The notes below the pieces were generated by a model that worked only from the letters and a program-made list of their open reading frames with translations, was not told where the DNA came from and ran no database searches. From Lytechinus pictus (taxonomy: Eukaryota): DNA of 64,000 nucleotides. Location of the stretch: positions 6,882,001 to 6,946,000 of the forward strand of contig NC_087248.1 of NCBI RefSeq assembly GCF_037042905.1, in the 5' to 3' direction. Positions 34,601 through 38,212 of this stretch are shown here, piece by piece. Position 1 is the stretch's first letter. Each line of letters opens with the position of its first letter. The position numbers and the translations under genes are program-made.

Positions 34601-37600
34601 TTTTTGTTCCTTTTAACTTGATTTTCCCCGTTTTTGGGCAATTAATGCCAAGAGGGAATATTTATTTGCATTTCGGTCGCGTTAATTTTCAAAAGTTTGA
34701 TTCATTAAAGACAAAAATTGAAGAGCCCGACGGGTGGATTTTGCATTGTAAGTCCCCCATTAATGGTGGCTGCACGATAGCGAGTAACCCAGGGAGCTCC
34801 GGCCCGCTGCGCGGGCCGGAGCCCAGGAGCTTACCGTGTATTTTACCATACTCACGGGACTAGGGTGAATTATGGTCTAAATATTTCTCCAAATGAATTG
34901 TGAAAACAGAAATTATGCACTTACCACGATTATATGGATGAAGGTCTAACGAGTGGCAGTTTCCTGACATCTGGGCACAGACTGGAACCTCAAAAAACGA
35001 AAAGTTCTCTCCTTCTACCCCCGTCTCGATCGGCCATTTTTGTTATGAATTGTAACAAAATGGCCGATCGAGACTGGGGTAAAAGGAGAGAACTTTTCGT
35101 TTTTTTGAGGGTCCAGTTTGGGCCTAGATGTCAGGAAACTGCCACTCGTTAGACCTTCATCCATTATAATCGTGGTAAGTGCATAATTTCTGTTTTCACA
35201 ATTCATTTGGAGAAATATTTAGACCATAAATCACCCTAGTCCCGTGAGTATGGTAAAATACACGGTAAGCTCCTGGGGCCCGTTTCTCAACACCTGGACA
35301 AGTTAGTCATATCTTTATCCACCAACCACGGAGTTAGTTCCAATCTTACTAAACCCGTTTCACGAAGGGCTTCCTAACTAGAATCCCTTGATATCGATAC
35401 TATCGGTTGAAAGAGCAGACGAGACGTAGCCTTAGTCACAAAATAGCATAATTTTTGAAAAGCAAAAATATGATAAAACTGCAACTATTGTGATTAATTT
35501 GGAAATACATATAATAAAAATAATAGCAGAGGCAAAATATGAACCATGCATACTTAAACCATGAAGACTGGAGCACTCAATTGCTGAGAAAATCAAATTA
35601 TGAATAATTCATTTCATGACTAAAAAATCACATGGGGACATTGAGATGGGTATCCCCGGGATAGTAAATTTTGATAGTTTACGAAAGTAAACCACAATTG
35701 TTTTCTTTGTAAAATAATGATAATTATACGTTTATTTATGGTTCCAAACATCATCAAAATATAGTTTAACATAAATGTTTAAATTTTTACACACCGAAAC
35801 ACACGATTTTGACAAATTCTTTGCATAAATTAGAGATAGTATTTATCAAAAATGTTGATAAGTTTGAAAACGACGAATACGAGTCCAGTTATGGATGACC
35901 TGCCGTGGTAGAATCTTTATCGATTCAATTATTTTACTATTTCAAAATGAGTGGTTTTGTTGCGTTTTACCAACAGTTTTTATAGTTTCTGTGCATTACA
36001 ACTATTATTGAATGATCTATCACACCTGTTTTGCAATGTAATTTCAACTTCTATGAATGATTACGTAAGATTACAATTTTCAAATTTTGAGGCAATTTTG
36101 CATGTCATAGTCTACCCACGTGATGTAGTCTTGAGGACGCAATGATGATGATTTTTAAAATAATGAAATATACTTCTTCATCATTGACGTCTTGACACTC
36201 TTCCCCCAGTCGCATAAGAGAAGGACCATAATAAAGATGGATTTCCCTCGGAAATCCATCTTTAGAAACAAAAATCACTTTAATTGTATTGATTTCATTA
36301 ATTTTCACACCTTCCTACGCCTAATGCGTAGGAAGGTTTTAAAAATTATAACATGAAAATGTGAAAAATTTAAGGTTTCTTACCTAACTGATGCTGAGTA
36401 AACCCCTCGAACCACATGTAAACAACGTAAGTACAATAGCGTCGACCCTTGAACCGCTTATGTATGACGTACTTCTGGCTAGCGATGCCGTTCTGATGAA
36501 TAATTTATAGAAAAAAAATTATTTCGCAAATGTTAAAATTTATCACGTAATTAAAAATAATTGGTATGAAACTGACAATTATTTTTAATTTACGTGATAC
36601 ATTTTAACATTTGCGAAATAATATTTTTTTTCTATAAATTATTCATCAGAACGGCATCGCTAGCCGGAAGTACGTCATACATAAGCGGTTCAAGGGTCGA
36701 CGCTATTGTACTTACGTTGTTTACATGTGGATCGAGGGGTTTACTCAGCATCAGTTAGGTAAGAAACCTTAAATTTTTCACACTTTCATGTTATAATTTT
36801 TAAAACCTTCCTACGCATTAGGCGTAGGAAGGTGTGAAAATTAATGAAATCAATACAATTAAAGTGATTTTTGTTTCTAAAGATGGATTTCCGAGGGAAA
36901 TCCATCTTTATTATGGTCCTTCTCTTATGCGACTGGGGGAAGAGTGTCAAGACGTCAATGATGAAGAAGTATATTTCATTATTTTAAAAATCATCATCAT
37001 TGCGTCCTCAAGACTACACGTGATGCCACTACGTCATTAAGAAAGTAGCTATAAAAGGTTCGGAGGTGTCATAAATATTTGGTCAGGTTGTTGTCCCCGA
37101 TCTTGGCAAAGAGGGCTTCGTGAAACGGTTAGCGGACAAGTAGCTCACTATCTTCGATTTAGTCAAGAAGTTAGACTTATGACGGTGTTGAGAAACGGGC
37201 CCCTGGGCTCCCGCCCGCTGCGTGGGCGGGAGTTCCCTGGGTTAGATAGCGAGCTGTCTGTGTATGAGGAGAAATTTAAAAAATAAAAAAATGTTAAAAA
37301 ACTCCTCGAAACAGACGGCTGCCAGCTGTCTAAGGCTACGGGAGACAGTCTCCGATATTATTGGCCATGCGCCTAACTTGTTAGTGTTACTGCTGAGCTT
37401 CACCGCGCGCCGCCGCCGAACGCCTCCTCGGCCTCGATGAGTAGTCTCGCCACTTTCTTTCGACAGCTGCGACAGTCGTCACATGTGTAAACCAAACGTG
37501 ATCGTGAACCTTCGCCTGCATGCATGCATGCAGCGCAGCGCTGGTACCGGTAAAGGTAACCCAGAGAGCTCCCGCCCGCGCAGCGGGCGGGAGCCCAGAA

Positions 37601-38212
37601 GCTTACCGTGTATTTTACCATTGTCACCGGACTAGGATGATTTATGGTCTAAATATTTCTCCAAATGATTTGTGAAAACGGAAAGTATACAATTACCACG
37701 ATTATATGGATGAAGGTCTAACGAGTGGCAGATTCCTGACATCTGGGCACAGTCTGGAACCTCAAAAAAACGAAAAGTTCTCTCCTTCTACCCAGTCTCG
37801 ATCGGCCATTTTGTTACGATTTTTAACAAAAATGGCCGATCGAGACGGGGTAGAAGGAGAGAACTTTTCGTTTTTTTGAGGTTCCAGACTGTGCCCAGAT
37901 GTCAGGAATCTGCCACTCGTTAGACCTTCATCCATATAATCGTGGTAATTGTATACTTTCTGTTTTCACAATTCATTTGGAGAAATATTTAGACCATAAA
38001 TCACCCTAGTCCGGTGACAATGGTAAATTACACGGTAAGCTTCTGGGCTCCCGCCCGCTGCGGGCGGGAGCTCTCTGGGTTACGGTAAAGGTAGTTTTTG
38101 AATTGGAGTGAGAATGAATGGCCCTGTATTTACGATCCTTCATCTTAGAAATCTGATGAATGAAAACAAATAAAAATAGCATAATATTCTCACCATTGTC
38201 CTTTTCAGCCAT
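25664..38212 (-). CDS. RBBP4: Histone-binding WD40 protein RBBP4/RbAp48 (CAF-1 p55 family), 428 aa; complement exons 38194..38212, 33880..34027, 33126..33176, 32548..32642, 31436..31609, 30718..30833, 29988..30148, 29206..29269, 27900..27962, 27316..27470, 26193..26361, 25664..25735
   Basis: The spliced product [47 protein letters not shown]...[57 protein letters not shown] is nearly identical to vertebrate RBBP4/RBBP7. All 11 introns are GT-AG with matching phases, and the exons sum to 1287 nt (429 codons including stop). Confidence 0.97.
26465..26637. mobile_element. Short TAGTCTGC-ended MITE in RBBP4 intron 10
   Basis: TAGTCTGC...GCAGACTA termini; degenerate 9-bp flanks GGCAAACCC/GACAAACTA. 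Confidence 0.6.
31060..31286. mobile_element. Tc1-like MITE in RBBP4 intron 5
   Basis: TA-CAGTGGTGCCCAAAAGTTAGTGAACCCCAC / GTGGGGTTCACTAACTTCTTAGCACCACTG, ~30-bp imperfect TIR. Confidence 0.75.
32110..32310. repeat. Degenerate ~20-bp tandem repeat (TAGACCAA core); the same family flanks 49512..50024
   Basis: Repeated TAGACCAA(A/G)TGG-like units, with inverted GGTCTA/AGTCTA units upstream. Confidence 0.6.
33658..33831. mobile_element. Harbinger-like MITE in RBBP4 intron 2
   Basis: GTGGGTGTTTCATAAAGCTG / CAGCTTTATGAAACACTCAC inverted termini with CTG/CAG flanks. Confidence 0.6.
35276..37202. mobile_element. PIF/Harbinger-type non-autonomous element B nested in the right arm of A (~1.03 kb own sequence)
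   Basis: Perfect 19-bp terminal inverted repeat (TIR) GGGCCCGTTTCTCAACACC / GGTGTTGAGAAACGGGCCC and 3-bp TSD CTG (35273..35275, 37203..37205). Second subterminal inverted pair CCGTTTCACGAAG / CTTCGTGAAACGG. Removing B restores the A arm. Confidence 0.88.
36126..37016. mobile_element. 891-bp near-perfect foldback element D nested in B
   Basis: Arms 36126..36563 and 36576..37016 with a 12-nt spacer. Termini TAGTCTTGAGG...CCTCAAGACTA. 9-bp TSD CACGTGATG at 36117..36125 and 37017..37025. The ORF track shows the same peptide on both strands. Confidence 0.9.
37557..38082. mobile_element. Foldback element C, 526 bp, uninterrupted sister copy of A
   Basis: Termini TAACCCAGAGAG...CTCTCTGGGTTA. Perfect 9-bp TSD CGGTAAAGG at 37548..37556 and 38083..38091. 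Palindrome centre near 37820; colinear with A. Confidence 0.92.

Follow-up and report, generated by a model that had tools for sequence, protein, structure and literature searches.

Foldback transposable elements with mirrored arms and an inverting subterminal hairpin loop in Lytechinus pictus

RESULTS

Two foldback elements in the window

We analyzed a stretch of 64,000 nucleotides of Lytechinus pictus DNA (the window; contig NC_087248.1, positions 6,882,001 to 6,946,000) that carries two foldback elements, A and C. These belong to two subfamilies of a foldback miniature inverted-repeat transposable element (MITE) of ~528 bp, with copies of 526 to 530 bp, and the subject here is how their long arms and the small hairpins near their ends change. 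Foldback C (37557..38082, + strand, 526 bp; inverted repeat I2) consists of two arms of 248 nt, 96% complementary, around a 16-nt center (37813-37828). It is bounded by copies of the 9-bp target site duplication (TSD) CGGTAAAGG at 37548..37556 and 38083..38091. The left arm of foldback A, its 16-nt center (about 35041-35056) and most of its right arm lie at 34785..35275 (+ strand; inverted repeats I4, I7 and I9). The right arm is broken just inside its terminal hairpin by a nested 1.9-kb (1,927-bp) non-autonomous element at 35276..37202 (inverted repeats I19 and I1), which is outside the foldback proper. This insertion has the terminal inverted repeat (TIR) GGGCCCGTTTCTC, a 3-bp TSD (CTG, at 35273-35275 and 37203-37205) and an internal 891-bp palindrome (36124-37018), and excising it in silico restores the arm sequence GCTCCTGGGCTCCCGCC. 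The true right terminus of A is at 37206..37244 (- strand), so that A spans 34785-37244 including the nested element, between copies of the 9-bp TSD GATAGCGAG at 34776..34784 and 37245..37253.

Both elements end in the same module, in which the 11 nt TAACCCAGRGA are followed by a 27-nt GC palindrome (a 12-bp stem and a 3-nt loop) and then by CCCAG. The hairpin therefore starts 11 nt from each element end. As single-stranded DNA, the module folds with −18 to −19 kcal/mol (z = −4.8 to −5.8). The C-left hairpin (37568..37594, + strand) has a C-type stem and the standard loop GCA, reading GCTCCCGCCCGC-GCA-GCGGGCGGGAGC. The C-right hairpin (38047..38071, - strand) is also C-type, is oriented in the standard way and carries a private deletion of 2 nt at its loop. 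The A-left hairpin (34796..34822, + strand) has a G-type stem and a flipped loop, GCTCCGGCCCGC-TGC-GCGGGCCGGAGC, and the A-right hairpin (37207-37233) has a C-type stem with two decay mismatches and the standard loop GCA as read from outside. The two termini of A are thus unlike, one being G-type with a flipped loop and the other C-type with an unflipped loop. Internal asymmetries show that A is inverted relative to C, so 'A-left' is homologous to 'C-right'.

An original prediction, made from the letters of the window, had treated A and C as sisters within 34785-38082. The pair is real, although the prediction had missed the interruption of A at 35276-37202, its inverted orientation and its differing termini. 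The prediction also described a 12-bp GC stem about 11 nt inside the ends, with a compensated C:G to G:C swap and a reverse-complemented loop between A-left and C-left, and this description is accurate. No open reading frame (ORF) of more than 81 amino acids and no Rfam match was found in the foldback region, and we rejected coding and RNA-family explanations on these grounds.

Harbinger/Tourist-like inserts (TIR GGGCCCGT...) sit at the identical site, CCCAG/G, just inside the hairpin in three MITE copies: A in the window (35273-35276/37200-37205), L089, and L077 at about 830. These three copies are of different subfamilies and hold two inserted families. Up to nine more ends genome-wide read CCCAGGGGCC or CCCAGGGCCC. 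The recurrent insertion looks like use of a preferred CWG target adjoining the palindrome.

A young, high-copy family of non-autonomous elements

We surveyed the genome assembly of 811 Mb in 368 contigs. With C as the query, at least 1,296 first-look candidate loci were obtained, 40 of which were scored and proved 98 to 99% identical. With A, there were at least 1,623 candidate loci, and identity to more than 40 genomic copies was 92 to 97%. Matching 9-bp TSDs flank C-family copies at all 30 fetched loci (C itself and 29 others). Among 27 delimited A-family copies, the 9-bp duplication is exact in 18, and four more have one or two mismatches (22/27). Divergence was measured on interiors only, against the family consensus. 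The mean for C is 0.3% (0.4 to 0.7% in an unbiased subset), and C is part of a very young burst; the A1 and A2 groups average 1.0 to 1.1%. These elements are short, non-coding and bounded by TIRs, with TSDs of constant length, high copy number and subfamilies of differing age, as is typical of MITEs.

The same terminal module also caps a number of further non-coding families, whose interiors differ or are related only at a distance. They include a 614-bp foldback, a foldback of 622-642 bp, and families with GAA/TTC loops. Across families, TIRs are about 225 to 275 bp long. Together with the 9-bp TSD, such long TIRs agree with Mutator-like elements (MULEs), for which a 9-11 bp TSD and TIRs of about 200 bp are characteristic. 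From TSD and TIR length only, we infer that the transposase moving these MITEs is probably Mutator-like. The genome contains 17 to 26 matches to PF10551 (MULE); six MULE loci, read at the match plus or minus 1.5 kb, contained no TAACCCAG end and no hairpin. A pattern search that excluded the major MITE families returned only further non-autonomous relatives. 'Long' copies (2.4-kb, 1.0-kb and 2.0-2.2-kb) were considered as autonomous elements and rejected, as they are MITEs with insertions or tandem or nested MITEs. A single-strand HUH transposon class (IS200/IS605-like or Helitron-like), which has subterminal hairpins and lacks TIRs and TSDs, was likewise rejected because long TIRs and 9-bp TSDs are present.

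One insertion of the 622-bp family recurs with identical flanks at several places (L074, L082 and L091; flank GTGTTGGTG), and L078 contains two copies of a 622-bp-family insertion with the flank AATTCACCT. Such identical flanks indicate that the MITE is part of a larger repeat unit or of a tandem duplication.

The stem swap is an old polymorphism of a shared module

Our hairpin search left both bases of the variable stem pair free and recovered 705 otherwise intact hairpins genome-wide. The variable pair is compensated in 703 and uncompensated in 2. On 54 distinct module sequences, this pair (17/33) is C:G in 26, G:C in 24 and A:T in 1. Elsewhere in the stem, all eleven pairs exhibit solely uncompensated decay, mostly CpG transitions. 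Covariation therefore occurs at pair 17/33 only, whereas a structure-constrained hairpin should have several compensated pairs. The G:C type is the form of the 614-bp, 622-bp and GAA/TTC families, and the C:G type is restricted to the A and C families. Because the G:C type is common to several MITE families, the swap is an old polymorphism of the module, produced by one or two events; it did not originate in the split of the sisters A and C. A-family copies combine three module types across their two ends.

The single A:T hairpin (L094:1332-1373) is reachable from the G:C type via one CpG transition per stem half.

Hairpin loops are frequently flipped, at either end and in several families

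Loop orientation was scored per end, from the outside inwards, which makes the flip call independent of copy orientation. C-type ends had the standard loop in 304 cases (GCA or the variants ACA, GTA and ATA) and its exact reverse complement in 57 of 361; among G-type ends, 95 were standard and 66 of 161 reverse-complemented. Both the swap and the flip recur genome-wide; neither is peculiar to the copy in the window. We found five loop pairs (GCA/TGC, ACA/TGT, GTA/TAC, GAA/TTC and AAA/TTT), the last two in other families. Flips occur at either end, and copies with zero, one or two flipped ends all exist; contigs C1-C5 contain six mixed and three double-flipped copies. Exact loop inversions that involve five loop pairs and several families, and that occur at either end, are the footprint expected of template switching. 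The C-left form is the commonest among the fetched loci (45/156 ends), and the exact form of A-left is present at five ends.

The flipped fraction is about 15 to 18% in the C family, which is 0.4% diverged (5/27 ends in the unbiased sample), and about 31% in A1, which is 1.1% diverged (8/26 ends). Under a two-state model, both families give a rough rate of about 0.4 flips per hairpin per 1% divergence, which is ~40 times the per-site substitution rate. Hairpins are also lost by deletion. More than 10 distinct deletions with short direct repeats at their borders (for example, GGGAGC...GGGAGC and CCCAGGG...CCCAGGG) were found among 40 A-family ends.

About six of the first 100 hairpin matches were solo-hairpin mini-elements of 49 to 70 bp (L099:791-839, L087 at about 780-850, L079 and L090), in which the terminal 11 to 19 nt flank a single hairpin; the one in L087 has a perfect 9-bp TSD. 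Each is what remains after a deletion from one terminal palindrome to the other. Separately, the loop variant GTA is a non-CpG C-to-T change in the left hairpins of L005, L018, L023, L024, L026, L029, L064 and L097. It marks a C sub-lineage and is the fixed loop in the 614-bp family. The loop-exposed cytosine may be prone to deamination.

Arms evolve in concert between families but not within copies

Copies were oriented by their asymmetric center before arms were compared. All of the A/C differences quoted in the original prediction are present and mirrored in both arms of each copy. In the C consensus, the arms (about 252 nt) differ at only two positions. When family consensuses are compared, arm-interior substitutions are overwhelmingly symmetric: 8 symmetric and 3 not between C and A1, 13 and 2 between C and A2, 30 and 4 between C and the 622-bp family, 51 and 1 between C and the 614-bp family, and 30 and 3 between the 622-bp and 614-bp families. 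Families with arms 15 to 23% diverged from those of C are still 96 to 98% complementary internally. In a maximum-likelihood tree, left and right arms group by family (support of 99/94 for the C clade and 100/100 for the 614-bp clade). Grouping by family and not by side holds across five families.

Within families, the pattern is different. Left arms form their own clade in C (92/87) and in A1 (92/84). Private substitutions are all confined to one arm (31 among 37 C copies and 68 among 20 A copies), and none is mirrored. Three one-arm markers are common to seven C copies of a young sub-lineage (L018, L023, L024, L026, L029, L064 and L097), so their source element transmitted its asymmetries unchanged. 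Given the left-arm clades, these markers and the 0 of 99 private changes mirrored, homogenization is episodic and does not accompany each copy or transposition. The prediction that arms are homogenized thus holds across the five families and fails at the level of single copies, and the termini of A are themselves not concerted.

An asymmetry 14 nt from the center is identical in A and C. The 614-bp and 622-bp families have the same unique center, yet they differ by 30 mirrored changes, which points to conversion and not to fresh foldback formation each time. Both observations rule out de novo formation of a foldback for each family. No center inversion was seen among the 37 C copies. These data show that arms evolve in concert, in rare events in source lineages, probably by copying between the arms of an existing foldback. 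Well-matched arms are perhaps favored for mobilization.

The original prediction also noted a patch of the A right arm (about 35110-35130) that breaks the symmetry. The patch is present; it consists of three private substitutions and one site that is a family-level left-arm marker. No local template for it was found within 2 kb on either side. The three private substitutions fall within 17 nt (35100-35135) and form a small mutation cluster.

One locus, L081 (G000:C1:42284349-42285457), is chimeric, with a C-type left arm and a right arm from a related subfamily (GTATTTGACCATATTCACC); the latter sequence is also present in L071, L073, L092 and L100. This chimera indicates that a single element can unite arms from different subfamilies.

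DISCUSSION

A and C resemble the foldback and long-TIR transposons (Drosophila FB and Tetris, sea urchin TU, and maize Mu1-type elements) in being non-coding, in having arms that make up nearly the whole element, in their many copies and in their TSDs. With Mutator and FB they also have in common the 9-bp TSD and TIRs of about 220 to 270 bp, whereas TU elements are reported to have 8-bp TSDs. The arms of FB and TU are made of tandem repeats; those of A and C are not. In long-TIR transposons, the two TIRs of one element resemble each other more than they do the TIRs of other classes. Particular to A/C-type families is the shared module with its perfect 27-nt GC palindrome.

We consider it likely, at roughly 60%, that A and C are cut-and-paste foldback MITEs with long TIRs and 9-bp TSDs that are subject to two templated mutation processes at inverted repeats. 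A transposase that makes 9-bp target duplications would move these non-autonomous elements, and the terminal module common to several MITE families would be the end that faces it. In the 27-nt palindrome, the 3-nt loop would be inverted by short template switches or by recombination of the two 12-bp stem halves, and a change in one half could be carried over to its partner in the same way. Such inversion would take place in situ, in a roughly clock-like manner and about 40 times as fast as a site is substituted, and the palindrome would also trigger slippage deletions. In the 250-nt arms, rare arm-to-arm copying, by gene conversion or snap-back synthesis, would re-match the outer arms and would become visible only in lineages that later become sources of new subfamilies, perhaps because closely matched arms are mobilized more readily. 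We infer this templated origin, by template switch or conversion, as the most economical explanation of the mirrored arms, the swap and the flip alike.

Both processes have precedents. Template-switch hairpin mutation, quasi-palindrome correction and chloroplast loop inversions likewise reverse-complement a loop exactly while the stem remains intact; they can leave a compensatory stem change as a by-product, and the palindromes involved provoke deletions. Template switching at hairpins is reported to yield compensatory changes and loop inversions in single events, with 'CM + loop inversion' and 'loop inversion only' listed among the single-event patterns (PMC8794818). In RNA genes loop inversions are rare, whereas here they affect the neutral end of a transposon with a thousand copies, where 16 to 41% of ends are flipped and can be counted. 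As for the arms, inverted repeats of the same molecule also recombine when large palindromes undergo gene conversion between their arms and when the TIRs of an insertion sequence recombine with each other, in which case inversion of the interior is documented (PMC3004938); such recombination homogenizes the arms and can invert the interior. The difference is that conversion here is seen only between families and not within copies.

Several points weigh against this explanation. The data do not separate flips at fixed insertions from flips during transposition or donor-site repair, and the several terminal-module combinations on near-identical A1 interiors need several sources or exchange between elements. 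There is a mild excess of double-flipped copies, somewhat at odds with independent flips, in very small numbers. The flip rate is a rough figure drawn from small samples, in which some flips were inherited within families. Stem covariation is compatible with a templated origin, but it concerns one pair, hence just one or two historical events, and a symmetric protein-binding site fits it equally well. The transposase was not found, nor was an autonomous partner in the six MULE loci, the family-excluding search or the long copies.

The main rival, which we regard as fairly unlikely, is donor-gap repair after excision. Here, flips, hairpin deletions, mixed termini and arm homogenization would arise mainly from the transposition cycle of a cut-and-paste element, through error-prone, template-switching refill from the sister chromatid or other copies; because refill starts at the termini, the terminal module would be remodeled most. 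A1 copies fit this well, as their interiors are ~1% diverged and their terminal 46 nt exhibit three module types, flips and about 25 to 30% deletions. The chimera of two subfamilies' arms at L081 is in line with it too, as are the solo-hairpin mini-elements, expected when two nascent ends anneal at the palindrome; however, in-place deletion between the two hairpins would yield the same mini-elements. Moreover, the flipped fraction increases with the age of the family at a common rate, all 31 private C substitutions are in one arm, most C flips have no flipped partner end, and no datum links a flip to excision. A stronger version, in which mobilization itself makes the flips, mixed termini and re-symmetrized arms via a snap-back single strand during excision repair or transposition, strikes us as improbable. 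If true, it would mean that a widespread MITE superfamily uses a folded single-stranded intermediate with a subterminal GC hairpin, a mode undescribed for eukaryotic TIR transposons.

It is very improbable that selection alone produced these patterns, with independent point mutations filtered for perfect pairing so that well-paired copies are mobilized and found families, or with a palindromic protein site that must stay symmetric. The compensation of nearly every variable pair, the conservation of the module across families, and a third state, A:T, that two CpG transitions can reach from G:C are all as this account expects. Yet independent double hits fall far short of accounting for the 30 to 51 exactly mirrored changes found per family pair, among which transversions are numerous, and an exact three-base loop inversion is impossible by point mutation at 0.4% divergence. 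Ends without a hairpin are frequent, and the purely uncompensated decay of the remaining eleven pairs likewise speaks against such filtering. Still more doubtful, to the point of being scarcely credible, is a rolling-hairpin mode, in which a folded single strand snaps back along its arms and its end hairpins are copied and resolved as in parvoviruses, giving flip/flop ends and corrected arms. In the terminal repeats of parvoviruses and adeno-associated virus (AAV), a segment within the palindrome does occur in either orientation, independently at each end; here, each end can have the loop in one orientation or the other, with rough independence between ends and a ratio that approaches 1:1 in older G-type ends, and the whole element can fold back on itself. 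But the viral hairpins are terminal, are resolved by a Rep nickase, flip about 1:1 in every generation and leave no target duplication. The hairpin here lies inside the end, the flip is confined to the 3-nt loop, and the young C family is about 15% flipped, not 50%. Most delimited copies have clean 9-bp TSDs, daughter copies inherit one-arm markers unchanged, mirrored private changes are absent, and the deletion products are of the type left by gap repair after excision. The element is non-coding, and no Rep-like gene is linked to the MITE family. A and C thus lack the set of features that defines parvovirus-like elements (terminal palindromes, no TSD, and a Rep/NS1 nickase), and the TSDs, the subterminal position of the hairpin and the excision-repair-type deletions contradict the original suggestion of passage through a folded single strand in place of cut-and-paste.

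As a transposon the element is of an ordinary junk-DNA kind; what makes it valuable is that it serves as a natural counter. With hundreds of neutral copies of a perfect 27-nt palindrome, each dated by its interior, the frequency of loop inversion and the deletion of palindromes in an animal germ line can be estimated directly. The arms of about 250 nt show that arm-to-arm copying is rare per copy and dominant between families. These findings are relevant to the way in which matching is kept between long TIRs, and to the ability of template switching to imitate selection for 'compensatory' changes.

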